A stretch of 64,000 nucleotides of DNA from Haliotis cracherodii. Taxonomy: Eukaryota. The translations under genes and the position numbers were made by a program. Positions within the stretch are counted from its first letter, which is position 1. Each line of letters begins with the position of its first letter. Of this stretch, positions 13,671 to 34,389 are shown piece after piece. The stretch covers positions 55,614,001 to 55,678,000 of the forward strand of contig NW_027266341.1 in NCBI RefSeq assembly GCF_022045235.1, in the 5' to 3' direction. The notes beneath the pieces were generated by a model. It did no database searches, was not told where the DNA came from, and saw only the letters and a program-made list of their open reading frames with translations.

Positions 13671-15138
13671 TTTTCCAAGATGTTTCTAACGTAACAATCA
13701 TTGTGGCTATCTTATAAAGGAGTGCGAATCGAGAATTGCCTTTCTACTCTAAAACACAAATGCCTCCACATGGGATATATTACGAGCACTTCACCCAACT
13801 AATAGCAGTAGTCGGACAAGGGGTTGAGAGTGATCTCCCTTCGCCCCAGTCAATATTGGATTCCACTCGTCTCATCATTATGGCTTTACAGGAGTCGACC
13901 TCACTGCTGGTCCTTTGGCCCGTGGTCTTCAGATATTGCAGAGGGCATGCTTTTATACATAGGCCGAGGCCAGGCGCAAGTAGAAAGCCATACTGACACC
14001 TACTCGTATGCAAGAGTAGATTGATGTACATATATATGACGTAATATTCGTATCTTGCATTCTACAAAAATACCTAAATAATACAAGGGGTCTGAATTCT
14101 ACCCCTGTACGTCCACATCAGCGTTTTCAAAATGGGACGGTCAATAGGATTCCTCTGACTGTGAGTGTGTGGGTGGCTAGGATTTTTTCAGAAAATAAAT
14201 ATATTGTCTCCGAAATTGATTGAAAACTAATTATGCTTCCATCTGTTGGACAAAAAGAACATGTCAGCCACCAAAAATACGTTGTTGCAAGGTGGAATTT
14301 TGAAAAAATGTTTTATTTAGGCTCATAATTTTAGCTGATTTTGCATTTGTAGCTGAAAAATATCCAGTCTCCATACAAAATCCAACGTCGCCCACTCCCC
14401 CTTCCAACAGAACATGAAATGGTCGGCCCCTTAGGCCTAGTATAGTAATAACCAATATGCTTGTCATTTATCTTTCTCTCCTATTAGCTATTTTCTGTGG
14501 TCGTCGTTTTTCCAGATTAGAAATCAAACCAAATAAGAACTGTCGCTGCACACGTTGGTATTTACCAGTACCATTTAACTTTTATTTTATCCCTTTAGGC
14601 TAGGGAATAATTCCCCAATCCCACTTGGATTATGAGAGATGGGCATTCTTACTAGCCTGCTAGCCCGTGTCAGTCTGTCGAATGTAAAAGGTATTGTGAA
14701 GGCTGGTATAATAGAGGGTCGTTATATGGTATCGCTATTCGGCCTAGCAAACGTTTAAGGTTAATGTCTACAAGAGATGATCCATATCAAAGTGAACAAA
14801 ATTCACCCTGTTTCGAGTAATGGAGGCACGAAAAACACCCCGTTTCACCTGCACAATGTTTTGAAACTGATGTAGGCAACGTTTCAGTTGTAAGTTACAA
14901 CTTAATCCCGGTGTTCAGACGAAATAAACTGGCAGTTTCACCCTCGGCAATGCCATTAGGCTTGACCACGCCGGAAGCTGGCGATGAGCCTCGTTCTGAC
15001 TCCTGGAACTCCGTAACGTAGTTACCGTTGCCGTTATCGACGTCCCTTCTGTTTTCAACAGAAAAACGATCGCTTTTGCTCCGCTGACCTCTACGTTTTG
15101 CTCACTGCTGTATCATTCCAAGTGTTTCTTCTTCCAAG

Positions 15139-16130
15139 ATGAATACAAGGCTTCACATTCAAGGTATTTAAGATCACAATTATTCCACTTAACAGTATTA
15201 AGATGTTAAATTAGACGTGAAATTGGTCGTTGTTAGGCAGCTGTATCGGGACTGAAGATGGCGGCCGCCATTTGCAATTGTCTTAACTGAACATTTTACA
15301 TTGTAAACTTGACATGTGGTGCTCAGATGAAACCTGTTCGTACATTATAGTGTCGGGCGATGTAGTACAGATGTAAGATAACCTGTATTACGTGAAAAGC
15401 AGGTGTTTGGCCCATTTTATTGGTTAAATGTCGTCTTGCAGCACAGCCTGTAACCCTACATACACTTGGAGTTCGAGGTGTCAAAGGGCCGAGGTCGAGT
15501 GACATACTGTAGCTGTCAGAAGTCGTAAATTGTGATTTTTTGAACGTAGCCGTCGGCGTACATTTAACTGAGCCTAGCTTTCGTTTTTCTTTTTCAGCTC
15601 GGGAGGACATAATTCGCTATTATGGCACTCCTGCGGCTGTGAGTTTGTGGCCGTCTCAGGATGAGGAGTCCGACTGTGTATGTATAATTTTACATGCCCT
15701 CCCTGTAAATTCTTCCGTCTAGTATAGGTGATTTGTTGCACATTAAGTCTGCCCAGTCCCTATAATAAACTGTGATTCGTTTTCTTTGCAAAAGTATCCC
15801 GTATTTCTGTCTGACCTGACTTCCTTTGTCCCTCCCTCCCTCCACCCCCTCGATGTGTAGCGTTCCCTGGCTGTGTCCCCTTCCCGTTGTCCCGACCCCC
15901 TGAGCGTCTTCACTCCGTTCTGGGCCCGCCCTGTCTACGGTGAGACGCTCCCCGCCCCCGTCACCATCAACCACGCTGATTACTATCCTGCCCCAAGTGA
16001 TGATGATGACAGTGACTACTGGGTGTACGAGGACCAGGACGACCACAGCTTTGTGGATGACAGAGACATTCATCCCTTTAGAAAGGCGCTGACGGGAGCG
16101 GCTGCCTTCTTTAGGAAGATCTTCTCTTAG
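15139..16130 (+). CDS. Array gene copy 1: 3-exon orphan ORF (15139-15163, 15598-15677, 15861-16130), 124 aa
   Basis: aagATG with an upstream in-frame stop; CAAG|gtattt (phase 1); tttttctttttcag|CT; TGT|gtatgt or GCT|gtgagt (both phase 0); ctgac + pyrimidine tract + tgtag|CGT; TAG stop; AATAAA at 16792 followed by a GT-rich tract. Confidence 0.6.
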
Positions 16131-16149
16131 ACTCCTTTATCCTTTTAAT

Positions 16150-16240
16150 GTCTGAATGTGTGCAAGTGAGTGAATGAATGAGCAGGTTTGTATGTATGTG
16201 TGCGTTTGTGTGAGAGTAAATATACGATTGAATGAGCATG

Positions 16241-16275
<35 letters not shown>

Positions 16276-16557
16276 GTGGGAGAGAGAGAGACAGAGAGAG
16301 AGAGACTGAATGAATATGTATGTTTGTGTGTGTGTATTGTGTGCGTGTAAGAGTAAATGTAAGATTGAATTATCATGTCTGTCTGTATGCATGTATGTGG
16401 GTATGTGTGTGTGAGTGTTTGTGTGTGAGTGTGAGAGAGTGAATGAGCATGTATGTATGATGTGTGTATGTATGTGTGAGAGGGAGAGTGTATATTGTGT
16501 ATATATGTTAGAGATGAGAGCTGGAGTGAATGAACGAGCCTACATGTATGTGTGTAT

Positions 16558-16613
<56 letters not shown>
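16150..16613. repeat. Compound (TG)n/(GA)n microsatellite block in each array unit (putative 3' UTR)
   Basis: Visible dinucleotide runs, repeated at ~19630-20100, 24395-24950, 27965-28475 and 32020-32450. Confidence 0.95.
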
Positions 16614-16615
<2 letters not shown>

Positions 16616-17052
16616 ACCATTCCAGCGTATTTTTGGCGTATTTTTAGGCTCACAGTTTTGGCCCAACTTTCAGTTTCCTTTTGGCAAACCTCTTTGCTTA
16701 TTAGCATGGCACAAGACCATACTTTCTATACAATTTTGGCCCGTTTTTGGATCTCCCTTGAGGCATATTACTTTCGACTTTCGGTCATCTGAATAAATGT
16801 TTCTGTAATGTATACACAAGTTGTTTGTTTTCTGTACAGTGTTTCTTCCTTACAGCTAATAATATCTGGGTGACAGCAACCTGCAAATCCCAGGGTTTCC
16901 GAACATGAGACATAAATTCATATGGATATTGTTAAAAAGTGAATGTTGCCCCTATATTGCTGTGCTGCTGTGTCCCAGTTTCATGATCTGCACTTAGCAA
17001 AAGATTTCTAAGTAGGTGGGGTTACCTTAAGATCAGACACTTCTAAATGTTT

Positions 17053-17236
17053 ATGTGGCGACAATTGTGACACGGGATATTCTCTGAGGACAGCTCTCTG
17101 ACACTTTGTTATCTGGAATAATTTTTTTATTCCAATATAATAGCTCATCGTTTCTAATGTAACAATAACTGTGGCTTCCTTTTAAAGGAGTGCGAATCGA
17201 GAATTGCCTTCTCTAAAACACAAGTGTCGCCACATG
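17053..17236. mobile_element. Small MITE-like element within the array unit
   Basis: Inverted ends ATGTGGCGACAATTGTG / CACAAGTGTCGCCACAT; recurs in the array units. Confidence 0.5.
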
Positions 17237-18617
17237 GGATATATTACGAGCACTTCACCCAACTAATAGCAGTAGTCGGACAAGGGGTTGAGAGTGATCT
17301 CCCTTCGCCCCAGTCAATATTGGATTCCACTCGTCTCATCATAATGGCTTTACAGGAGTCGACCTCACTGCTGGTCCTTTGGCCCGTGGTCTTCAGATAT
17401 TGCAGAGGGCATGCTTTTATACATAGGCCGAGGCCAGGCGCAAGTAGAAAGCCTATACTGACACCTACTGGTATGCAAGAGTAGATTGATGTATATATAT
17501 ATGACGTAGTATTCGTATCTTGCATTCTACAAAAATACCTAAATAATACAAGGGGTCTGAATTCTACCTCTGTACGTCCACATCAGCGTTTTCAAAATGG
17601 GACGGTCAATAGGATTTCTGTGACTGTGAGTGTGTGGGTGGCTAGATATTTTTTTCCCCAAAAAATGTTTTCTTCGAAATTGATTGAAAACTAATTATGC
17701 TTCCATCTGTTGAACAAAAAAAACATGTCAGCCACCAAACAATACATTGTTTTGTGGTGGGTTTTTGAAAAAAACATTTTTTTAGTAGTTTATACTAATC
17801 ATAGTTTTAAACCTGATTTTGCATTTGTAGCTGAAAAATATCTAGTCTCCATACAAAATCCAACGTCGCCCACTCCCCCTTCCAACAGAACATGAAATGG
17901 TCGGCCCCTTAGGCCTAGTATAGTAATAACCAATATGCTTGTCATTTATCTTTCTCTCCTATTAGCTATTTTCTGTGGTCGTCGTTTTTCCAGATTAGAA
18001 ATCAAACCAAATAAGAACTGTCGCTGCACACGTTGGTATTTACCAGTACCATTTAACTTTTATTTTATCCCTGTAAGCTAGGGAATAATTCCCCAATCCT
18101 ACTTGGATTATCAGAGATGGGCATTTTTACTAGCCTGCTAGCCCGTGTCAGTCTGTCGAATGTAAAAGGTATTGTGAAGGCTGTTATAATAGAGGGTCGT
18201 TATATGGTATCGCTATTCGGCCTAGCAAACGTTTAAGGTTAATGTCTACAAGAGATGATCCATATCAAAGTGAACAAAATTCACCCTGTTTCGAGTAATG
18301 GAGGCACGAAAAACACCCAGTTTCACCTGCACAATGTTTTGAAACTGATGTGGGCAACGTTTCAGTTGTAAGTTACAACTTAATCCCGGTGTTCAGACGA
18401 CATAAACCCGGCAGTTTCACCCTCGGCAATGCCATTAGGCTTGACCACGCCGGAAGCTGGCGATGAGCCTCGTTCTGACTCCTGGAACTCCGTAACGTAG
18501 TTACCGTTGCCCTTATCGACGTCCCTTCTGTTTTCAACAGAAAAACGATCGCTTTTGCTCCGCTGACCTCTACGTTTTGCTAACTGCTGTATCATTCCAA
18601 GTGTTTCTTCTTCCAAT

Positions 18618-19605
18618 ATGAATACAAGGCTTCACATTCAAGGTATTTAAGATCACAATTATTCCACTTAACAGTATTAAGATGTTAAAGTAGACGTGAA
18701 ATTGGTCGTTGTTAGGCAGCTGTATCGGGACTGAAGATGGCGGCCGCCATTTGCAATAGTCTTAACTGAACATTTTAGATTGTAAACTTGACATGTGGTG
18801 CTCAGATGAAACCTGTTCGTACATTATAGTGTCGGGCGATGTAGTACAGATGTAAGATAACCAGTAATACGTGAAAAGCAGCTGTTTGGCCTATTTTATT
18901 GGTTAAATGTCGTCTTGCAGCACAGCCTGTAACCCTACATACACTTGGAGTTCGAGGTGTCCAAGTGCCGAGGTCGAGTGACATACTGTAGCTGTCAGAA
19001 GTCGTAAATTGTGATTTTTTGAACGTAGCCGTCGGCGTACATTTAACTGAGCCTAGCTTTCGTTTTTCTTTTTCAGCTCGGGAGGACATAATTCGCTATT
19101 ATGGCACTCCTGCGGCTGTGAGTTTGTGGCCGTCTCAGGATGAGGAGTCCGACTGTGTATGTATAATTTTACATGCCCACCCTGTAAATTCTTCCGTCTA
19201 GTATAGGTGATTTGTTGCACATTAAGTCTGCCCAGTCCCTATAATAAACTGTGATTCGTTTTCTTTGCCAAAGTATCCCATATTTCTGTCTGACCTGACT
19301 TCCTTTGTCCCTCCCTCCACCCCCTCGATGTGTAGCGTTCCCTGGCTGTGTCCCCTTCCCGTTGTCCCGACCCCCTGAGCGTCTTCACTCCGTTCTGGGC
19401 CCGCCCTGTCTACGGTGAGACGCTCCCCGCCCCCGTCACCATCAACCACGCTGATTACTATCCTGCCCCAAGTGATGATGATGACAGTGACTACTGGGTG
19501 TACGAGGACCAGGACGACCACAGCTTTGTGGATGACAGAGAGATTCATCCCTTTAGAAAGGCGCTGACGGGAGCGGCTGCCTTCTTTAGGAAGATCTTCT
19601 CTTAG
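18618..19605 (+). CDS. Array gene copy 2 (18618-18642, 19077-19156, 19336-19605)
   Basis: Same exons and splice sites; ORF intact. Confidence 0.58.
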
Positions 19606-19715
19606 ACTCCTTTATCCTTTTAATGTCTGAATGTGTGCAAGTGAGTGAATGAATGAGCAGGTTTGTATGTATGTGTGCGTTTGTGTGAGAGTAAATATAC
19701 GATTGAATGAGCATG

Positions 19716-19755
<40 letters not shown>

Positions 19756-20034
19756 GGAGAGAGAGAGACAGAGAGAGAGAGACTGAATGAATATGTATGT
19801 TTGTGTGTGTGTATTGTGTGCGTGTAAGAGTAAATGTAAGATTGAATTATCATGTCTGTCTGTATGCATGTATGTGGGTATGTGTGTGTGAGTGTTTGTG
19901 TGTGAGTGTGAGAGAGTGAATGAGCATGTATGTATGATGTGTGTATGTATGTGTGAGAGGGAGAGTGTATATTGTGTATATATGTTAGAGATGAGAGCTG
20001 GAGTGAATGAACGAGCCTACATGTATGTGTGTAT

Positions 20035-20102
<68 letters not shown>

Positions 20103-22104
20103 ACCATTCCAGCGTATTTTTGGCGTATTTTTAGGCTCACAGTTTTGGCCCAACTTTCAGTTTCCTTTTGGCAAACCTCTTTGCTTATTAGCATGGCACA
20201 AGACCATACTTTCTATACAATTTTGGCCCGTTTTTGGATCTCCCTTGAGGCATATTACTTTCGACTTTCGGTCATCTGAATAAATGTTTCTGTAATGTAT
20301 ACACAAGTTGTTTGTTTTCTGTACAGTGTTTCTTCCTTACAGCTAATAATATCTGGGTGACAGCAACCTGCAAATCCCAGGGTTTCCGAACATGAGACAT
20401 AAATTCATATGGATATTGTTAAAAAGTGAATGTTGCCCCTATATTGCTGTGCTGCTGTGTCCCAGTTTCATGATCTGCACTTAGCAAAAGATTTCTAAGT
20501 AGGTGGGGTTACCTTAAGATCAGACACTTCTAAATGTTTATGTGGCGACAATTGTGACACGGGATATTCTCTGAGGACAGCTCTCTGACACTTTGTTATC
20601 TGGAATAATTTTTTTATTCCAATATAATAGCTCATCGTTTCTAATGTAACAATAACTGTGGCTTCCTTTTAAAGGAGTGCGAATCGAGAATTGCCTTCTC
20701 TAAGACACAAGTGTCGCCACATGGGATATATTACGAGCACTTCACCCAACTAATAGCAGTAGTCGGACAAGGGGTTGAGAGTGATCTCCCTTCGCCCCAG
20801 TCAATATTGGATTCCACTCGTCTCATCATAATGGCTTTACAGGAGTCGACCTCACTGCTGGTCCTTTGGCCCGTGGTCTTCAGATATTGCAGAGGGCATG
20901 CTTTTATACATAGGCCGAGGCCAGGCGCAAGTAGAAAGCCTATACTGACACCTACTGGTATGCAAGAGTAGATTGATGTATATATATATGACGTAGTATT
21001 CGTATCTTGCATTCTACAAAAATACCTAAATAATACAAGGGGTCTGAATTCTACCCCTGTACGTCCACATCAGCGTTTTCAAAATGGGACGGTCAATAGG
21101 ATTTCTCTGACTGTGAGTGTGTGGGTGGCTAGATATTTTTTTCCCCAAAAAATGTTTTCTTCGAAATTGATTGAAAACTAATTATGCTTCCATCTGTTGA
21201 ACAAAAAAAACATGTCAGCCACCAAACAATACATTGTTTTGTGGTGGGTTTTTGAAAAAAACGTTTTTTTAGTAGTTTATACTAATCATAGTTTTAAACC
21301 TGATTTTGCATTTGTAGCTGAAAAATATCTAGTCTCCATACAAAATCCAACGTCGCCCACTCCCCCTTCCAACAGAACATGAAATGGTCGGCCCCTTAGG
21401 CCTAGTATAGTAATAACCAATATGCTTGTCATTTATCTTTCTCTCCTATTAGCTATTTTCTGTGGTCGTCGTTTTTCCAGATTAGAAATCAAACCAAATA
21501 AGAACTGTCGCTGCACACGTTGGTATTTACCAGTACCATTTAACTTTTATTTTATCCCTGTAAGCTAGGGAATAATTCCCCAATCCTACTTGGATTATCA
21601 GAGATGGGCATTTTTACTAGCCTGCTAGCCCGTGTCAGTCTGTCGAATGTAAAAGGTATTGTGAAGGCTGTTATAATAGAGGGTCGTTATATGGTATCGC
21701 TATTCGGCCTAGCAAACGTTTAAGGTTAATGTCTACAAGAGATGATCCATATCAAAGTGAACAAAATTCACCCTGTTTCGAGTAATGGAGGCACGAAAAA
21801 CACCCAGTTTCACCTGCACAATGTTTTGAAACTGATGTGGGCAACGTTTCAGTTGTAAGTTACAACTTAATCCCGGTGTTCAGACGACATAAACCCGGCA
21901 GTTTCACCCTCGGCAATGCCATTAGGCTTGACCACGCCGGAAGCTGGCGATGAGCCTCGTTCTGACTCCTGGAACTCCGTAACGTAGTTACCGTTGCCCT
22001 TATCGACGTCCCTTCTGTTTTCAACAGAAAAACGATCGCTTTTGCTCCGCTGACCTCTACGTTTTGCTAACTGCTGTATCATTCCAAGTGTTTCTTCTTC
22101 CAAT

Positions 22105-22129
22105 ATGAATACAAGGCTTCACATTCAAG
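22105..22129 (+). CDS. Array gene copy 3, exon A only (rest lost in the 100-N gap 22225-22324)
   Basis: ATGAATACAAGGCTTCACATTCAAG|gt followed by an assembly gap. Confidence 0.4.
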
Positions 22130-23385
22130 GTATTTAAGATCACAATTATTCCACTTAACAGTATTAAGATGTTAAAGTAGACGTGAAATTGGTCGTTGTT
22201 AGGCAGCTGTATCGGGACTGAAGANNNNNNNNNNNNNNNNNNNNNNNNNNNNNNNNNNNNNNNNNNNNNNNNNNNNNNNNNNNNNNNNNNNNNNNNNNNN
22301 NNNNNNNNNNNNNNNNNNNNNNNNTAATACAAGGGGTCTGAATTCTAACCTGTACGTCCACATCAGCGTTTTCAAAATGGGACGGTCAATAGGATTTCTC
22401 TGACTGTGAGTGTGTGGGTGGCTAGGATTTTTTCAGAAAATAAATATATTGTCTCCGAAATTGATTGAAAACTAATTATGCTTCCATCTGTTGGACAAAA
22501 AGAACATGTCAGCCACCAAAAATACGTTGTGGCAAGGGTGGAATTTTGAAAAAATGTTTTATTTAGACTCATAATTTTAGCTGATTTTGCATTTGTAGCT
22601 GAAAAATATCTAGTCTCCATACAAAATCCAAGGTCGCCCACTCCCCCTTCCAACAGAACATGAAATGGTCGGCCCCTTAGGCCTAGTATAGTAATAACCC
22701 AATATGCTTGTCATTTATCATTCTCTCCTATTAGCTATTTTCTGTGGTCGTCGTTTTTTCCAGATTAGAAATCAAACCAAATAAGAACTGTTGCTGCACA
22801 CGTTGGTATTTACCAGTACCATTTAACTTTTATTTTATCCCTGTAGGCTAGGGAATAATTCCCCAATCCACTAGGATTATCAGAGATGGGCATTCTTACT
22901 AGCCTGCTAGCCCGTGTCAGTCTGTCGAATGAAAAAGGTATTGTGAAGGCTGGTATAATAGAGGGTCGTTATATGGTATCGCTATTCGGCTAGCAAACGT
23001 TTAAAGGTTAATGTCTACAAGAGATGATCCATATCAAAGTGAACAAAATTCACCCTGTTTCGAGTAATGGAGGCACGAAAAACACCCAGTTTCACCTGCA
23101 CAATGTTTTCAAACTGATGTAGGCAACGTTTCAGTTGTAAGTTACAACTTAATCCCGGTGTTCAGACGAAATAAACTGGCAGTTTCACCCTCGGCAATGC
23201 CATTAGGCTTGACCACGCCGGAAGCTGGCGATCAGCCTCGTTCTGACTCCTGGAACTCCGTAACGTAGTTACCGTTGCCCTTATCGACGTCCCTTCTGTT
23301 TTCAACAGAAAAACGATCGCTTTTGCTCCGCTGACCTCTACGTTTTGCTAACTGCTGTATCATTCCAAGTGTTTCTTCTTCCAAT

Positions 23386-24372
23386 ATGAATACAAGGCTT
23401 CATATTCAAGGTATTTAAGATCACAATTATTCCACTTAACAGTATTAAGATGTTAATTTAGACGTGAAATTGGTCGTTGTTAGGCAGCTGTATCGGGACT
23501 GAAGATAGCGGCCGCCATTTGCAATTGTCTTAACTGAACATTTTACATGTAAACTTGACATGTGGTGCTCAGATGAAACCTGTTCGTACATTATAGTGTC
23601 GGGCGATGTAGTACAGATGTAAGATAACCTGTATTACGTGAAAAGCAGCTGTTTGGCCCATTTTATTGGTTAAATGTCGTCTTGCAGCACAGCCTGTAAC
23701 CCTACATACACTTGGAGTTCGAGGTGTCAAAGGGCCGAGGTCGAGTGACATACTGTAGCTGTCAGAAGTCGTAAATTGTGATTTTTTGAACGTAGCCGTC
23801 GGCGTACATTTAACTGAGCCCAGCTTTCGTTTTTCTTTTTCAGCTCGGGAGGACATAATTCGCTATTATGGCACTCCTGCGGCTGTGAGTTTGTGGCCGT
23901 CTCAGGATGAGGAGTCCGACTGTGTATGTATAATTTTACATGCCCACCCTGTAAATTCTTCCGTCTAGTATAGGTGATTTGTTGCACATTAAGTCTGCCC
24001 AGTCCCTATAATAAACTGTGATTCGTTTTCTTTGCCAAAGTATCCCGTATTTCTGTCTGACCTGACTTCCTTTGTCCCTCCCTCCACCCCCTCGATGTGT
24101 AGCGTTCCCTGGCTGTGTCCCCTTCCCGTTGTCCCGACCCCCTGAGCGTCTTCACTCCGTTCTGGGCCCGCCCTGTCTACGGTGAGACGCTCCCCGCCCC
24201 CGTCACCATCAACCACGCTGATTACTATCCTGCCCCAAGTGACGATGATGACAGTGACTACTGGGTGCACGAGGACGAGGACGACCACAGCTTTGTGGAT
24301 GACAGAGAGATTCATCCCTTTAGAAAGGCGCTGACGAGAGCGGCTGCCTTCTTTAGGAAGATCTTCTCTTAG
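23386..24372 (+). CDS. Array gene copy 4 (23386-23410, 23844-23923, 24103-24372)
   Basis: Same structure; synonymous CAC>CAT and GAT>GAC, replacements Y>H, Q>E and G>R. Confidence 0.58.
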
Positions 24373-26951
24373 ACTCCTTTATCCTTTTAATGTCTGAATG
24401 TGTGCAAGTGAGTGAATGAATGAGCAGGTTTGTATGTATGTGTGCGTTTGTGTGAGAGNNNNNNNNNNNNNNNNNNNNNNNNNNNNNNNNNNNNNNNNNN
24501 NNNNNNNNNNNNNNNNNNNNNNNNNNNNNNNNNNNNNNNNNNNNNNNNNNNNNNNNNNNNNNNNNNNNNNNNNNNNNNNNNNNNNNNNNNTGTGTGTGTG
24601 TATTGTGTGCGTGTAAGAGTAAATGTAAGATTGAATTATCATGTCTGTCTGTATGCATGTATGTGTGTATGTGTGTGTGAGTGTTTGTGTGTGAGTGTGA
24701 GAGAGTGAATGAGCATGTATGTATGATGTGTGTATGTATGTGTGAGAGGGAGAGTGTATATTGTGTATATATGTTAGAGATGAGAGCTGGGGTGAATGAA
24801 CGANNNNNNNNNNNNNNNNNNNNNNNNNNNNNNNNNNNNNNNNNNNNNNNNNNNNNNNNNNNNNNNNNNNNNNNNNNNNNNNNNNNNNNNNNNNNNNNNN
24901 NNNNNNNNNNNNNNNNNNNNNNNNNNNNNNNNNNNNNNNNNNNNNNNNNNNNTATTTTTGGCGTATTTTTAGGCTCACAGTTTTGGCCCAACTTTCAGTT
25001 TCCTTTTGGCAACCCTCTCGGCTTATTAGCATGGCACAAGGCCATACTTTTTATACAATTTTGGCCCGTTTTTGGATCTCCCTTGAGGCATACTACTTTC
25101 GACTTTCGGTCATCTGAATAAATGTTTCTGTAATGTATACACAAGTTGTTTGTTTTCTCTACAGTGTTTCTTCCTTACAGCTAATAATATGTGGGTGACA
25201 GCAGCATCGCAATATTGGCATATGCCCAAATCCCAGGGTTTCCGAACATGAGACATAAATTCATATGGATATTGTTAAAAAGTGAATGTTGCCCCTATAT
25301 TGCTGTGCTGCTGTGTCCCAGTTTCATGATCTGCACTTAGCAGAAGATTTCTAAGTAGGTGGGGTTACCTTAAGATCAGACACTTCTAAATGTTTATGTG
25401 GCGACAATTGTGACACGGGATATTCTCTGAGGACAGCTCTCTGACACTTTGTTATCTGGAATATTTTTTTTATTCCAATATAATAGCTCATCGTTTCTAA
25501 TGTAACAATAACTTTGGCTTCCTTTTAAAGGAGTGCGAATCGAGAATTGCCTTCTCTAAAACACAAGTGTCGCCACATGGGATATATTACGAGCACTTCA
25601 CCCAACTAATAGCAGTAGTCGGACAAGGGGTTGAGAGTGATCTCCCTTCGCCCCAGTCAATATTGGATTCCACTCGTCTCATCATTATGGCTTTACAGGA
25701 GTCGACCTCACTGCTGGTCCTTTGGCCCGTGGTCTTCAGATATTGCAGAGGGCATGCTTTTATACATAGGCCGAGGCCAGGCGCAAGTAGCAAGCCTATA
25801 CTGACACCTACTCGTATGCAAGAGTAGATTGATGTATATATATATATGACGTAATATTCGTATCTTGCATTCTACAAAAATACCTAAATAATACAAGGGG
25901 TCTGAATTCTAACCCTGTACGTCCACATCAGCGTTTTCAAAATGGGACGGTCAATAGGATTTCTCTGACTGTGAGTGTGTGGGTGGCTAGGATTTTTTCA
26001 GAAAATAAATATATTGTCTCCGAAATTGATTGAAAACTAATTATGCTTCCATCTGTTGGACAAAAAGAACATGTCAGCCACCAAAAATACGTTGTGGCAA
26101 GGTGGAATTTTGAAAAAATGTTTTATTTAGGCTCATAATTTTAGCTGATTTTGCATTTGTAGCTGAAAAATATCTAGTCTCCATACAAAATCCAAGGTCG
26201 CCCACTCCCCCTTCCAACAGAACATGAAATGGTCGGCCCCTTAGGCCTAGTATAGTAATAACCAATATGCTTGTCATTTATCTTTCCCTCCTATTAGCTA
26301 TTTTCTGTGGTCGTCGTTTTTCCAGATTAGAAATCAAACCAAATAAGAACTGTCGCTGCACACGTTGGTATTTACCAGTACCATTTAACTACTGTATTTT
26401 ATCCCTGTAGGCTAGGGAATAATTCCCCAATCCCACTTGGATTATCAGAGATGGGCATTCTTACTAGCCTGCTAGCCCGTGTCAGTCTGTCGAATGTAAA
26501 ATGTATTGTGAAGGCTGGTATAATAGAGGGTCGTTATATGGTATCGCTATTCGACCTAGCAAACGTTTAAGGTTAATGTCTACAAGAGATGATCCATATC
26601 AAAGTGAACAAAATTCACCCTGTTTCGAGTAATGGAGGCACGAAAAACACCCAGTTTCACCTACACAATGTTTTGAAACTGATGTAGGCAACGTTTCAGT
26701 TGTAAGTCACAACTTAATCCCGGTGTTCAGACGAAATAAACCCGGCAGTTTCACCCTCGGCAATGCCATTAGGCTTGACCACGCCGGAAGCTGGCGATGA
26801 GCCTCGTTCTGACTCCTGGAACTCCGTAACGTAGTTACCGTTGCCCTTATCGACGTCCCTTCTGTTTTCAACAGAAAAACGATCGCTTTTGCTCCGCTGA
26901 CCTCTACGTTTTGCTAACTACTGTATCATTCCAAGTGTTTCTTCTTCCAAT

Positions 26952-27939
26952 ATGAATACAAGGCTTCACATTCAAGGTATTTAAGATCACAATTATTCCA
27001 CTTAACAGTATTAAGATGTTAAATTAGACGTGAAATTGGTCGTTGTTAGGCAGCTGTATCGGGACTGAAGATGGCGGCCGCCATTTGCAATTGTCTTAAC
27101 TGAACATTTTAGATTGTAAACTTGACATGTGGTGCTCAGATGATACCTGTTCGTACATTATAGTGTCGGGCGATGTAGTACAGATGTAAGATAACCTGTA
27201 TTACGTGAAAAGCAGCTGTTTGGCCCATTTTATTGGTTAAATGTCGTCTTGCAGCACAGCCTGTAACCCTACATACACTTGGAGTTCGAGGTGTCAAAGG
27301 GCCGAGGTCGAGTGACATACTGTAGCTGTCAGAAGTCGTAAATTGTGATTTTTTGAACGTAGCCGTCGGCGTACATTTAACTGAGCCTAGCTTTCGTTTT
27401 TCTTTTTCAGCTCGGGAGGACATAATTCGCTATTATGGCACTCCTGCGGCTGTGAGTTTGTGGCCGTCTCAGGATGAGGAGTCCGACTGTGTATGTATAA
27501 TTTTACATGCCCTCCCTGTAAATTCCTCCGTCTAGTTTAGCTGATTTGTTGCACATTAAGTCTGCCCAGTCCCTATAATAAAGTGTGATTCGTTTTCTTT
27601 GCAAAAGTATCCCGTTTTTCTGTCTGACCTGACTTCCTTTGTCCTTCCCTCCGTCCCCTCGATGTGTAGCGTTCCCTGGCTGTGTCCCCTTCCCGTTGTC
27701 CCGACCCCCTGAGCGTCTTCACTCCGTTCTGGGCCCGCCCTGTCTACGGTGAGACGCTCCCCGCCCCCGTCACCATCAACCACGCTGATTACTATCCTGC
27801 CCCAAGTAACGATGATGACAGTGACTACTGGGTGTACGAGGACGAGGACGACCACAGCTTTGTGGATGACAGAGAGATTCATCCCTTTAGAAAGGCGCTG
27901 ACGAGAGCGGCTGCCTTCTTTAGGAAGATCTTCTCTTAG
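26952..27939 (+). CDS. Array gene copy 5 (26952-26976, 27411-27490, 27670-27939)
   Basis: Same structure; ORF intact. Confidence 0.58.
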
Positions 27940-28047
27940 ACTCCTTTATCCTTTTAATGTCTGAATGTGTGCAAGTGAGTGAATGAATGAGCAGGTTTGT
28001 ATGTATGTGTGCGTTTGTGTGAGAGTAAATATAAGATTGAATGAGCA

Positions 28048-28078
<31 letters not shown>

Positions 28079-29180
28079 CAGAGAGAGACAGAGAGAGGCT
28101 GAATGAATATGTATGTTTGTGTGTGTGTGTATTGTGTGCGTGTAAGAGTAAATGAAAGATTGAATTATCATGTCTGTCTGTATGCATGTATGTGTGTATG
28201 TGTGTGTGAGTGTTTGTGTATGAGTGTGAGAGAGTGAATGAGCATGTACGTATGATGTGTGTATGTATGTGTGAGAGGGAGAGTGTATATTGTGTATATA
28301 TGTTAGAGATGAGAGCTGGAGAGAATGAAGAANNNNNNNNNNNNNNNNNNNNNNNNNNNNNNNNNNNNNNNNNNNNNNNNNNNNNNNNNNNNNNNNNNNN
28401 NNNNNNNNNNNNNNNNNNNNNNNNNNNNNNNNNNNNNNNNNNNNNNNNNNNNNNNNNNNNNNNNNNNNNNNNNNTTTGGCGTATTTTTAGGCTCACAGTT
28501 TTGGCCCAACTTTCAGTTTCCTTTTGGCAAACATCTTGGCTTATTAGCATGGCACAAGACCATACTTTCTATACAATTTTGGCCCGTTTTTGGATCTCCC
28601 TTGAGGCATACTACTTTCGACTTTCGGTCATCTGAATAAATGTTTCTGTAATGTATACACAAGTTGTTTGTTTTCTCTACAGTGTTTCTTCCTTACAGCT
28701 AATAATATGTGGGTGACAGCAGCATCGCAATATTGGCATATGCCCAAATCCTAGGGTTTCCGAACATGAGACATAAATTCATATGGATATTGTTAAAAAG
28801 TGAATGTTGCCCCTATATTGCTGTGCTGCTGTGTCCCAGTTTCATGATCTGCACTTAGCAGAAGATTTCTAAGTAGGTGGGGTTACCTTAAGATCAGACA
28901 CTTCTAAATGTTTATGTGGCGACAATTGTGACACGGGATATTCTCTGAGGACAGCTCTCTGACACTTTGTTATCTGGAATAATTTTTTTATTCCAATATA
29001 ATAGCTCATCGTTTCTAATGTAACAATAATTGTGGCTTCCTTTTAAAGGAGTGCGAATCGAGAATTGCCTTCTCTAAAACACAAGTGTCGCCACATGGGA
29101 TATATTACGAGCACTTCACCCAACTAATAGCAGTAGTCGGACAAGGGATTGAGAGTGATCTCCCTTCGCCCCAGTCAATA

Positions 29181-29712
29181 CAAGCTCCTTCCCAGCGCGT
29201 GACACCTTCGTTACACTCTCGGTAACATCGCTGCCACCAGTGTGGGCGCGGCCATTTCAAGAATCTTGAAATTTGCCCTCCAACCCCATATGTAGTAACG
29301 TTTATACTTTTTTTTATGTCTCTGGGAATGCCATCATATTTCAATTTGAAAAGGTTTACGACTGACCATGTTTTCCAGATGAATTCACTTTGTTGTTTTG
29401 ATAATCAGATTGGTTCGAGATTGCAGACTAACGGAAAATCAACCAACTTCTCCCTTACATTCTTACTATATCAATAACACGATAGTTTTAATGAAACAGA
29501 AATTCAAATTGACAAACGAAGAAAGTAATTTAGCAGCGATAAGTGTATTCGGCGTCACGACAGTCGTCACTTGTTTGTAAACATAACGGTCATTCGGTTG
29601 CGAGTTCAACTCCAAGCATGGTTGTGGCCACCTATTCACAGTGGGGAGTTTTGACTGGTGGCAGCGATAGTATAGAGAGCTCCGGGAACGTACTATCGCT
29701 GTGAGGAGCTTG
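29181..29712. mobile_element. 532-bp non-autonomous DNA transposon (MITE, MULE-like) inserted in one array unit
   Basis: TIRs CAAGCTCCTTCCCAGCG / CGCTGTGAGGAGCTTG; 9-bp TSD CAGTCAATA (29172-29180, 29713-29721); empty site in the five other copies of this segment. Confidence 0.9.
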
Positions 29713-31008
29713 CAGTCAATATTGGGTTCCACTCGTCTCATCATTATGGCTTTACAGGAGTCGACCTCACTGCTGGTCCTTTGGCCCGTGGTCTTCAGAT
29801 ATTGCAGAGGGCATGCTTTTATACATAGGCCGAGGCCAGGCGCAAGTAGAAAGCCTATACTGACACCTACTCGTATGCAAGAGTAGATTGATGTATATAT
29901 ATATATGACGTAATATTCGTATCTTGCATTCTACAAAAATACCTAAATAATACAAGGGGTCTGAATTCTACCCCTGTACGTCCACATCAGCGTTTTCAAA
30001 ATGGGACGGTCAATAGGATTTCTCTGACTGTGAGAGTGTGGGTGGCTAGGACTTTTTCAGAAAATAAATATATTGTCTCCGAAATTGATTGAAAACTAAT
30101 TATGCTTCCATCTGTTGGACAAAAAGAACATGTCAGCCACCAAAAATACGTTGTTGCAAGGTGGGATTTTGAACAAATGTTTTATTAAGGCTCATAATTT
30201 TAGCTGATTTTGCATTTGTAGCTGAAAAATATCTAGTCTCCATACAAAATCCAAGGTCGCCCACTCCCCCTTCCAACAGAACATGAAATGGTCGGCCCCT
30301 TAGGCCTAGTATAGTAATAACCAATATGCTTGTCAGTTATCTTTCCCTCCTATTAGCTATTTTCTGTGGTCGTCGTTTTTCCAGATTAGAAATCAAACCA
30401 AATAAGAACTGTCGCTGCACACGTTGGTATTTACCAGTACCATTTAACTTTTATTTTATCCCTGTAGGCTAGGGAATAATTCCCCAATCCCACTTGGATT
30501 ATCAGAGATGGGCATTCTTACTAGCCTGCTAGCCCGTGTCAGTCTGTCGAATGTAAAATGTATTGTGAAGGCTGGTATAATAGACAGTCGTTATATGGTA
30601 TCGCTATTCGACCTAGCAAACGTTTAAGGTTAATGTCTACAAGAGATGATCCATATCAAAGTGAACAACATTCACCCTGTTTCGAGTAATGGAGGCACGA
30701 AAAACACCCAGTTTCACCTGCACAATGTTTTGAAACTGATGTAGGCAACGTTTCAGTTGTAAGTCACAACTTAATCCCGGTGTTCAGACGAAATAAAACC
30801 GGCAGTTTCACCCTCGGCAATGCCATTAGGCTTGACCACGCCGGAAGCTGGCGATGAGCCTCGTTCTGACTCCTGGAACTCCGTAACGTAGTTACCGTTG
30901 CCGTTATCGACGTCCCTTCTGTTTTCAACAGAAAAACGATCGCTTTTGCTCCGCTGACCTCTACGTTTTGCTAACTGCTGTATCATTCCAAGTGTTTCTT
31001 CTTCCAAG

Positions 31009-31996
31009 ATGAATACAAGGCTTCACATTCAAGGTATTTAAGATCACAATTATTCCACTTAACTGTATTAAGATGTTAAATTAGACGTGAAATTGGTCGT
31101 TGTTAGGCAGCTGTATCGGGACTGAAGATGGCGGCCGCCATTTGCAATTGTCTTAACTGAACATTTTAGATTGTAAACTTGACATGTGGTGCTCAGATGA
31201 TACCTGTTCGTACATTATAGTGTCGGGCGATGTAGTACAGATGTAAGATAACCTGTATTACGTGAAAAGCAGCTGTTTGGCCCATTTTATTGGTTAAATG
31301 TCGTCTTGCAGCACAGCCTGTAACCCTACATACACTTGGAGTTCGAGGTGTCAAAGGGCCGAGGTCGAGTGACATACTGTAGCTGTCAGAAGTCGTAAAT
31401 TGTGATTTTTTGAACGTAGCCGTCGGCGTACATTTAACTGAGCCTAGCTTTCGTTTTTCTTTTTCAGCTCGGGAGGACATAATTCGCTATTATGGCACTC
31501 CTGCGGCTGTGAGTTTGTGGCCGTCTCAGGATGAGGAGTCCGACTGTGTATGTATAATTTTACATGCCCTCCCTGTAAATTCCTCCGTCTAGTTTAGCCG
31601 ATTTGTTGCACATTAAGTCTGCCCAGTCCCTATAATAAAGTGTAATTCGTTTTCTTTGCCAAAGTATCCCGTTTTTCTGTCTGACCTGACTTCCTTTGTC
31701 CCTCCCTCCACCCCATCGATGTGTAGCGTTCCCTGGCTGTGTCCCCTTCCCGTTGTCCCGACCCCCTGAGCGTCTTCACTCCGTTCTGGGCCCGCCCTGT
31801 TTACGGTGAGACGCTCCCCGCCCCCGTCACCATCAACCACGCTGATTACTATCCTGCCCCAAGTAACGATGATGACAGTGACTACTGGGTGTACGAGGAC
31901 GAGGACGACCACAGCTTTGTGGATGACAGAGAGATTCATCCCTTTAGAAAGGCGCTGACGAGAGCGGCTGCCTTCTTTAGGAAGATCTTCTCTTAG
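31009..31996 (+). CDS. Array gene copy 6 (31009-31033, 31468-31547, 31727-31996)
   Basis: Same structure; ORF intact. Confidence 0.58.
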
Positions 31997-32105
31997 ACTC
32001 CTTTATCCTTTTAATGTCTGAATGTGTGCAAGTGAGTGAATGAATGAGCAGGTTTGTATGTATGTGTGCGTTTGTGTGAGAGTAAATATAAGATTGAATG
32101 AGCAT

Positions 32106-32141
<36 letters not shown>

Positions 32142-32398
32142 AAGAGAGAGACAGAGAGAGGCTGAATGAATATGTATGTTTGTGTGTGTGTGTATTGTGC
32201 GTGTAAGAGTAAATGAAAGATTGAATTATCATGTCTGTCTGTATGCATGTATGTGTGTATGTGTGTGTGAGTGTTTGTGTGTGAGTGTGAGAGAGTGAAT
32301 GAGCATGTATGTATGATGTGTGAGAGGGAGAGTGTATATTGTGTATATATGTTAGAGATGAGAGCTGGAGTGAATGAACGAGCCTACATGTATGTGTG

Positions 32399-32454
<56 letters not shown>

Positions 32455-34389
32455 CCATTCCAGTGTATTTTTGGCGTATTTTTAGGCTCACAGTTTTGGC
32501 CCAACTTTCAGTTTCCTTTTGGCAAACCTCTTGGCTTATTAGCATGGCACAAGACCATACTTTCTATACAATTTTGGCCCGTTTTTGGATCTCCCTTGAG
32601 GCATATTACTTTCGACTTTCGGTCATCTGAATAAATGTTTCTGTAATGTATACACAAGTTGTTTGTTTTCTCTACAGTGTTTCTTCCTTACAGCTAATAA
32701 TATGTGGGTGACAGCAGCATCGCAATATTGGCATATGCCCAAATCCTAGGGTTTCCGAACATGAGACATAAATTCATATGGATATTGTTAAAAAGTGAAT
32801 GTTGCCCCTATATTGCTGTGCTGCTGTGTCCCAGTTTCATGATCTGCACTTAGCAGAAGATTTCTAAGTAGGTGGGGTTACCTTAAGCTTAGACACTTCT
32901 AAATGTTTATGTGGCGACAATTGTGACACGATATATTCTCTGAGGACAGCTCTCTGACACTTTGTTATCTGGAATAATTTTTTTATTCCAATATAATATC
33001 TCATCATTTCTAATGTAACAATAATTGTGGCTTCCTTTTAAAGGAGTGCGAATCGAGAATTGCCTTCTGTAAAACACAAGTGTCGCCACATGGGATATAT
33101 TACGAGCACTTCACCCAACTAATAGCAGTAGTCGGACAAGGGATTGAGAGTGATCTCCCTTCGCCCCAGTCAATATTGGGTTCCACTCGTCTCATCATTA
33201 TGGCTTTACAGGAGTCGACCTCACTGCTGGTCCTTTGGCCCGTGGTCTTCAGATATTGCAGAGGGCATGCTTTTATACATAGGCCGAGGCCAGGCGCAAG
33301 TAGAAAGCCTATACTGACACCTACTCGTATGCAAGAGTAGATTGATGTATATATATGACGTAATATTCGTATCTTGCATTCTACAAATATACCTAAATAG
33401 TACAAGGGGTCTGAATTCTACCCCTGTACGTCCACATCAGCGTTTTCAAAATGGGACGGTCAATAGGATTTCTCTGACTGTGAGTGTGTGGGTGGCTAGG
33501 ATTTTTTCAGAAAATAAATATATTGTCTCCGAAATTGATTGAAAACTAATTTTGCTTTTAGTAATATTCCAGCAATATGGAGGGGGGCTCCAGAAAGTGG
33601 CTTCACATATTGTACCCATGTGGGGAATTGAACCCTGGTCTTTGGCCTGAAGGCGAACACTTTAACCACTAGGCTACCCCCACTGCGCCAAAGGGAGGAA
33701 GAACAATTGTTTTTATTATGTGGAGAACTTTGGCATACATGTTTCTTCTTATGATTACATATAGTATCACTGCTGCAGAAAACATTTGAATATCAATGAT
33801 GACAGTAACTTTTACTCAGTAGCTGTCTTTGTGTTTTTAGCTATTGAATACATGGTGAGTGACCTGTGACATGGCACTAATGTCTGTGTACATCCTTGTA
33901 TGCTAACCATGTGTTGTATCCTGATCATGTGTCTTCACATCCTGACTTTGGGATTGCTCACCCTTTCGTCACCAGATCAGTTCCCGACACGAAATCACAT
34001 GCTGCCATGATACAGCAGTGAGAGTGCTAGTAGTGGGATCACACACAAATGTATGATGATTTTTCACTACTCGATAGAAGTATAGGTCACAGCTGCACAC
34101 CAAGAAACAAATATTGATTCTCACCTAAAAAGGGTGGCTAAATAAATGTTACACCAAACACTAATAAGTAGTGGAAACTTAAATACTTGACACTGCCAAC
34201 TGTAAATCATCAGTGTGCCAGTGATCGGCCATCCTGTCTAGGGAAAAAGATGGCTTACCCCAACAGATAAGCACCAGCAAGTATCGTGATTCATATTGGA
34301 TCGTAAGCAACGTATCGTGATACGTATTCGGCCATCCTGTCTATGAAAAAGATGGCTTACACACCACAGATAAGCACAAACAAGTATCG

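Follow-up and report, generated by a model that had tools for sequence, protein, structure and literature searches.

Each unit of a tandem array in the genome of Haliotis cracherodii is, in our reading, a self-contained and transcribed protein-coding gene that belongs to an abalone-only, amplified and selected family. The array lies in the stretch of 64,000 nucleotides (nt) that we analysed (contig NW_027266341.1, positions 55,614,001 to 55,678,000 of the forward strand; hereafter the window, in whose numbering positions are given), and its genes consist of three exons and encode a protein of 124 amino acids. We put the probability of this reading, in which we include a role for gene dosage, at about 85%. 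The window is one small array of a derived subfamily, and the family as a whole is a very large new case of the gene-bearing macrosatellite or ampliconic kind which, as far as database searches extend, is known so far only from Haliotis. Comparison of diverged arrays reveals, at the level of sequence, purifying selection on the coding sequence, on the splice sites and on a block of ~300 nt comprising promoter and exon 1, while the introns, the 3′ untranslated region (3′UTR) and the spacer drift. A first-pass annotation of the window, made from the letters alone, had described an orphan gene hidden in a macrosatellite. The gene is an orphan but it is not hidden, because automated annotation in RefSeq already models it.

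Structure of the array and of its genes

The array occupies 13682–33557 on the forward strand (BLAST of 15000–18600 against the window). Its units of ~3.48 kilobases (kb) follow one another head-to-tail with a period of 3479 nt and, when one unit is compared with the window, show 94–99% identity to unit 1. The left edge falls mid-spacer, at unit position 2151, and the right edge at unit position 2703. As segments of open reading frame (ORF), exon 1 is found six times and exons 2 and 3 five times each, so that the window holds five complete three-exon genes and one that is interrupted by an assembly gap. Both the BLAST comparison and the exon copies thus agree with the first-pass annotation, which had placed a repeated unit of three segments with canonical borders here.

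All copies lie on the forward strand. Copy 1 (15139–16130) comprises exon 1 at 15139–15163, intron 1 at 15164–15597, exon 2 at 15598–15677, intron 2 at 15678–15860 and exon 3 at 15861–16130, which ends in the stop codon TAG. The corresponding exons are found at 18618–18642, 19077–19156 and 19336–19605 in copy 2 (18618–19605), at 23386–23410, 23844–23923 and 24103–24372 in copy 3 (23386–24372), at 26952–26976, 27411–27490 and 27670–27939 in copy 4 (26952–27939), and at 31009–31033, 31468–31547 and 31727–31996 in copy 5 (31009–31996). The interrupted copy is represented by its exon 1 (22105–22129), which is followed by a gap at 22225–22324 beyond which the sequence restarts at unit position 2545. 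Because exons 2 and 3 are hidden by this gap and hence unread, we do not judge this copy, and the gap may conceal any number of units.

Exon 1 is 25 nt long (ATG..CAAG^GT, where ^ marks a splice border) and is followed by the donor GTATTT. Exon 2 measures 80 nt (ttttcag^CTCGGG..GACTGT^GTATGT) and is, together with its immediate flanks, 100% identical across the five copies. Exon 3, of 89 codons plus TAG, stands behind a pyrimidine tract and tgtag^, and its frame is open in all five. The two introns are of the GT-AG type and are inserted in phase 1 after codon 8 and in phase 0 after ...EESDC. The ATG of every copy in the window is preceded by an A at −3 and, 54 nt upstream, by a stop in the same frame, with no other ATG in the 150 nt before it, and each copy has one AATAAA 634–745 nt past the stop codon. 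In copy 1 this is the sole poly(A) signal within 1.4 kb past the stop (16792–16797, forward strand), and the equivalents in the other copies are at 20279, 25117, 28635 and 32630. The features that the first-pass annotation had listed for the gene (A at −3, upstream in-frame stop, AATAAA about 660 nt past the stop, and frame and splice sites kept in all five complete copies) therefore stand.

The same gene model is found in RefSeq. A search with exon 3 returned entries labelled 'uncharacterized protein' from Haliotis rufescens (94% identity) and Haliotis asinina (75%, P0002), and the exon 3 sequences of the window are 94–100% identical to the H. cracherodii and H. rufescens entries P0001, P0003, P0007, P0014 and P0016, with that of copy 3 matching H. 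cracherodii XP_071089038.1 (P0007) at 100%. The translations of exons 1 and 2 are identical to residues 1–35 of P0007 and P0014. Further entries are XP_071106956.1 of H. cracherodii, LOC125376035 and LOC125372355 of H. rufescens, and XP_067685017.1 of H. asinina. The models have 124 amino acids in H. cracherodii and H. rufescens, and the relatives in H. asinina have 120–122. Those of 124 amino acids share with the window model, as the first-pass annotation had proposed it, the same start, both junctions (...HIQ-A... and ...EESDC^RSLAVS...) and the same C-terminus, and in each copy the tblastn alignment is interrupted between residues 35 and 36. H. asinina retains frame and junction phases at 75–83% identity, and the blocks VFTPFWARP, GETLPAPVTI, SDYWVYED and AAFFR are conserved as far as this species. 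At some loci RefSeq has an isoform of 140 amino acids that begins within intron 1; the five copies of the window have GTA instead of ATG at that codon and hence cannot encode it. The Haliotis models are automated predictions for which we found no name, function or publication in the literature searched, and the same literature yielded zero relevant matches on Haliotis macrosatellites or abalone tandem arrays.

Family size and purifying selection

A DNA search of the genome with exon 3 gave 219 candidates, and a six-frame search with the H. asinina protein gave at least 457 candidate exon-3 copies. The frame is open over at least 88 amino acids in 150 of 150 scored candidates, these being the best-scoring of the 457. 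A 23-nt motif over the FTPFWARP codons has 198 matches in the genome with at most one mismatch, compared with 0 for the reversed control. The copies form dozens of arrays on seven chromosomes (contigs C1, C2, C12, C34, C45, C56 and C78), with periods of 3.1–5.3 kb. Inverted pairs of arrays separated by tens to hundreds of kb are frequent, as on C78 (53.32–53.37 Mb, minus strand, and 53.96–53.99 Mb, plus strand), C1 (34.88–34.90 Mb, plus, and 35.28–35.31 Mb, minus) and C56 (32.67–32.69 Mb, minus, and 32.73–32.75 Mb, plus). Most copies are of a major type whose exons 1 and 2 read MFTRLHIQ / AREDMIRYHVTPAASLWPSLDEESDC, like those of H. asinina, and the window type (MNTRLHIQ / AREDIIRYYGTPAAVSLWPSQ...) forms a derived clade that occurs on C78, C12 and C1. 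In a tree of 40 copies, sequences cluster by array, which is consistent with local amplification and homogenisation. The lineage-specific ampliconic gene family envisaged by the first-pass annotation was, if anything, understated, given the number of candidates and of chromosomes, and among the cluster representatives searched (see below) its homologues are found only in Haliotis. Apparent intron-less copies (query residues 5–120 within ~345 nt) were rejected as spurious read-through of stops; at locus L004, ~1 kb separates exon 2 from the exon 3 downstream of it.

In RefSeq, a 655-amino-acid H. cracherodii model, XP_071118469.1 (P0029, on C34), strings together nine exon 3s of consecutive units by means of a donor after ..EDRE, and reflects either transcripts that read through the array or an error of annotation. 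The copies of the major type, several hundred in number, otherwise seem to be missing from the protein database as single genes.

Within the window the copies are too similar to show selection, exactly as had been noted, but diverged arrays elsewhere in the genome do show it. We sampled twenty 10-kb stretches from different arrays in addition to the window, and estimated the ratio of non-synonymous to synonymous divergence (dN/dS) between paralogous arrays of this genome only, per exon and with the split codon left out, by the Nei-Gojobori method (NG86). The ratio is 0.17 between subfamilies (dS 0.69, dN 0.118), 0.16 among major-type arrays and 0.19 within the window type. On the tree of 40 copies, parsimony steps at codon positions 1/2/3 number 51/34/117 (p = 4e-13), and those in exon 2 by itself 8/2/16 (p = 0.003). 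In comparisons in which non-coding DNA can still be aligned, indel events number 0 in exons versus 0.4–1.5 per 100 nt in introns, and mismatch rates in exons are 2–5 times lower. Exon 3 is full length and open in 41 of 42 sampled copies, and the chance of zero stops in exon 3 given 176 random substitutions is ~3–6e-3. The remaining copy, the sole defective one (L007:8704–8871; C34, ~58.1517 Mb), is truncated by foreign sequence: its exon 3 ends after ..SDYWVDE and unrelated sequence follows.

Exon 2 could be located in 40 copies and exon 1 in 35. These are all the copies for which the sampled stretches extended far enough, except for two that lacked a recognisable exon 1. Donors and acceptors are invariant in all sampled copies with flanking sequence (for intron 2, donor GTATGT and acceptor TAG). 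The length of intron 1 ranges from 274 to 643 nt and that of intron 2 from 179 to 987 nt, the latter falling into all three classes modulo 3 and always containing in-frame stops. When the window unit is set against 18 diverged arrays, the only alignable blocks are exon 2, exon 3 and a stretch at 14970–15290 that spans the promoter, the 5′UTR, exon 1 and the beginning of intron 1; the rest of the introns, the 3′UTR and the 2.3-kb spacer are unalignable in this comparison.

Outside the genus, a profile built on twelve members of the family was compared with 1.84 billion cluster representatives, a collection from which un-annotated vetigastropod genomes are absent. It matched only three: H. asinina P0002 (representative of the cluster to which the family itself belongs), XP_071118469.1, and a metagenomic ORF, P0030. 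Among these representatives there is accordingly no homologue outside Haliotis, one doubtful metagenomic repeat apart. P0030 (from metagenome SRR5271169) is an ORF of 622 amino acids with nine repeats of 69, in which AASL..S..EE and NPL..FTPFW..P stand in the order seen in the family. We rejected it as a relative, since nine near-identical repeats together account for its 48 bits and hhalign gives a probability of 22%; the resemblance may be due to chance or may reflect a distant relative from an unsampled animal, and is a weak lead. Pfam searches with exon 3, the RefSeq proteins and six other ORFs of the unit gave only sub-threshold low-complexity matches. The best E-value in a PDB profile search was 0.36, and the best ESM Atlas score, 0.77, lies below chance level. 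The first-pass annotation, too, had recognised no family.

Transcription and competing readings

Transcription was assessed in four runs from four studies with four organism labels, whose contigs were aligned with one unit and whose origin from RNA is a guess. Of the two junctions predicted by the first-pass annotation, the one across intron 1 was recovered: a GT..AG joint resolving to 15163^15598 is present in all four runs, and loose contig ends bearing the final bases of exon 1 abut exon 2. When contig depths are summed, exon bins exceed intron and spacer bins several-fold; depth falls beyond ~16855 in runs X1 and X8. Among the contigs there is also a diverged paralogue that is in frame (..TYVDHYPAPS..). 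The second predicted junction, 15677^15861, went unseen, and contigs run through intron 2.

This last result is among the observations that weigh against a transcribed, spliced and dosage-relevant gene. The 15677^15861 joint is not reported in the contigs of any of the four runs, and contigs with a depth of 49–418 run unbroken from 15629 to 15920/35, crossing intron 2, so that this intron may at least often be retained or the contigs may be pre-mRNA or DNA. The absence of the joint may alternatively be technical, as a junction unitig at k=31 has only ~30 nt per side and may escape placement; the intron 1 joint, unlike that of intron 2, is anchored by a long upstream side. The runs further contain low-depth contigs across the spacer and the joint between units. 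Expression is poorly measured by contig depth, conserved exons gather contigs from many paralogues, and decayed copies may be under-sampled among those scored. Finally, the functional part of our reading, namely dosage, production in germline or embryo and the role of the C-terminal helix discussed below, is what we infer.

The contigs that cross intron 2 have 2–6 times the depth of intron 1 in the same runs and approach the depth of some exon 3 contigs (49 versus 74 in X8). Together with the missing joint, they would suit a real gene in which intron 2 is mostly retained as a detained intron, the 124-amino-acid protein being made only after completed splicing; most of the RNA would then either specify only a peptide of 49 amino acids that terminates within the intron, or be withheld or degraded. 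Besides the technical explanation given above, this has to contend with the strong coding constraint on exon 3. Exon 3 lacks a methionine codon and is preceded by an in-frame TAG, hence constraint upon it requires splicing to exon 2 and would provide indirect support for the unseen junction. The RefSeq models in three species use this junction as well, and it is on conservation and on these models that the intron 2 junction rests. We consider a predominantly detained intron to be improbable, and it would in any case be a regulatory overlay on a selected gene family rather than a replacement for it.

Amplification might also have been driven by genetic conflict instead of a need of the organism for dosage, as a copy-number arms race of a germline-expressed gene, comparable to sex-linked or meiotic-drive ampliconic families, that is possibly policed by small RNA from the inverted arrays. 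The hundreds of copies, the repeated and independent formation of arrays on seven chromosomes, the frequency of inverted pairs, the lineage restriction and the small disordered product would all fit such a history, and RNA runs bearing the same species label are almost without words from the family, which hints at restricted expression. Against this, dN/dS is uniformly 0.16–0.19, positive selection is unseen on the long branch leading to the window type, and linkage to a sex-determining or drive locus is without support. Conflict as the driving force thus seems to us unlikely. A non-coding or transcribed macrosatellite with a chance alignment of ORFs is refuted in practice. It would explain why searches returned no domain, structural match or extra-genus homologue, and why copies within the window are too alike to carry a signal of selection, but it is incompatible with a dN/dS of 0.17 at dS 0.69, the third-position bias, exons free of indels beside introns in which indels are frequent, conservation between subfamilies that is confined to exons and promoter, and the frame and junction phases kept in H. 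asinina.

The copy number and the spread over many chromosomes would also be expected if the unit were the interior of a transposon or virus-like element amplified in tandem, an objection that the first-pass annotation had itself raised; the comparison proved negative as far as it was run (spacer search, Pfam and Rfam). All scored matches to the spacer lie within sister arrays (89–100% identity on C78, 84–90% on C12), and dispersed solo copies of spacer or exons are absent from the best-scored matches, all of which are in tandem arrays. The ORFs of at least 50 amino acids in the unit contain no transposase, reverse transcriptase, integrase or other element domain in Pfam, and no Rfam family was found for the unit. 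Copies are arranged head-to-tail and not as single insertions, and the only true mobile element (29181–29712) is an insertion into one unit. An origin as a transposon interior is on these grounds highly improbable.

The protein, comparable systems and minor features of the unit

The protein product has an isoelectric point of 4.6, with 22 acidic and 12 basic residues. Its last 18 residues carry a net charge of +5 and have a hydrophobic moment of 0.62, and the rest of the protein has a charge of −15. AlphaFold2 gives a single helix at residues 107–123 with a mean predicted local distance difference test score of 53, which is low confidence. The protein is thus predicted to be mostly disordered, with the C-terminal ~18 residues forming a cationic amphipathic helix. 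On the Kyte-Doolittle scale the first 40 amino acids reach at most a mean of 0.5 over 12 residues, so that the hydrophobic core of a signal peptide is lacking, although no dedicated predictor was run. In this respect the protein does not resemble the precursor of a secreted shell-matrix protein or antimicrobial peptide.

In the selected gene family that we favour, arrays would expand and become uniform through unequal crossing-over or gene conversion, and would seed new arrays on other chromosomes. A high copy number would allow the protein to be made in bulk in some restricted tissue or stage, most likely the germline or early development by analogy with other ampliconic small disordered proteins. 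The basic helix would be the working end, for interaction or anchoring, and the acidic disordered body would mask or modulate it.

Several known systems share parts of this organisation, and the abalone family shares sequence with none of those considered here. The human GAGE/PAGE, CT47 and D4Z4/DUX4 loci consist of kilobase-scale tandem units each with a complete gene, and are lineage-restricted. The products of GAGE/PAGE and CT47 are small, acidic and intrinsically disordered, and their function is unclear; DUX4 is an intronless homeobox gene. The abalone family resembles these loci in its gene-bearing kilobase-scale units, its lineage restriction and its conspicuous copy number, and GAGE/PAGE and CT47 also in the type of protein. 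Human macrosatellite and ampliconic arrays, however, have roughly 10–100 units at one or a few loci, compared with the hundreds of candidates in dozens of arrays described above, and germline expression is for the abalone family a supposition. The Stellate and Su(Ste) repeats of Drosophila are short intron-containing genes arranged head-to-tail, in up to hundreds of copies and at more than one locus. The abalone family is likewise made up of intron-containing genes for a short protein, head-to-tail and at several loci. It differs in being plainly under purifying selection, and the domain (CK2 beta-like), the sex linkage and the silencing by PIWI-interacting RNA are features of Stellate. Histone repeats such as the sea urchin early genes and the Drosophila locus, with hundreds of units, conserved promoters, purifying selection and a function in bulk supply, offer the closest likeness in the scale of copy number, in the conserved promoter and in selection. 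Histone genes are nonetheless universal, intronless and not polyadenylated, whereas the abalone gene is genus-restricted and apparently spliced and has a poly(A) signal.

To our knowledge, intact and selected protein-coding genes in several hundred copies are rare outside the histones, and the ampliconic families that have been studied well lie mostly on sex chromosomes of mammals or flies. A genus-restricted gene for an acidic disordered protein, held by selection at some 450 or more intact tandem copies, could be the mollusc counterpart of these systems if it is expressed in the germline or early embryo, a suggestion that we make tentatively and would not yet back. If true, it would represent a mollusc ampliconic system on autosome-like chromosomes, which would either provide a new protein in bulk or take part in a copy-number arms race. 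As the gene is young and confined to one genus, with clear subfamilies and arrays of different ages, its amplification can be traced across abalone species, and selection on its coding sequence and promoter is measurable. The family thereby allows one to test, in animals that are both farmed and endangered, how the dosage of a new gene comes to be critical and by what route arrays reach other chromosomes. There is also an annotation gap, in that hundreds of copies seem to be missing or mis-chained, which would distort abalone gene counts and quantification by RNA sequencing.

The non-coding parts of the unit contain further conserved elements, all on the forward strand. The putative promoter and 5′UTR block of copy 1 (14961–15138) is alignable with the 18 diverged arrays. 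Within it, GCCGGAA near 14970, GTAACGTAGTTACCGTTG at 15013–15030 and the palindrome TCTGTTTT(C/G)AACAGA at 15048–15062 are kept in all or nearly all of 17 aligned array representatives. A candidate regulatory element in intron 1, GGCCGCCATTTGCAAT (15263–15278), is found in 17 of 17, one of them with a single mismatch, and is extended in the window type to the palindrome AAGATGGCGGCCGCCATTT. It looks like a YY1 core joined to an octamer-like site, and it may be an internal promoter for the 140-amino-acid isoform of other loci.

Downstream of the coding sequence, the 3′UTR of copy 1 begins with a tract of GT/GA microsatellites (16131–16620, forward strand). The equivalent tracts of units 4 and 5 contain three assembly gaps (24459–24590, 24804–24952 and 28333–28474), which overlap neither exon nor intron; their flanks are collinear with the unit, and the missing unit bases number 109, 91 and 98 versus 132, 149 and 142 N. 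The remaining 3′UTR and inter-genic spacer (16621–18478, forward strand) was examined by alignment and against Pfam and Rfam, the latter two giving zero matches. It is common to window-type arrays only (84–100% identity) and is unalignable with arrays of the major type. Within this spacer, the stretch 17784–17899 shows a bump in contig depth in all four runs, and contigs leave the unit at 17819/17828 and at 17858/17861 into unrelated sequence; the stretch is common to something that is expressed or repeated elsewhere. An antisense ORF at 15690–16073 (127 amino acids) was rejected as a gene, because it enters the unconserved intron 2 and belongs to no family.

The first-pass annotation had held that indels fall only in introns and spacers. 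Their position outside the exons was confirmed, but a mobile-element insertion of 532 base pairs (bp) at 29181–29712, present only in the spacer of unit 5, had been overlooked. The inserted sequence has at least 2458 candidate copies in the genome, many of them exactly 532 bp long and 99–100% identical, and is a very young, non-autonomous mobile element that is probably still active.

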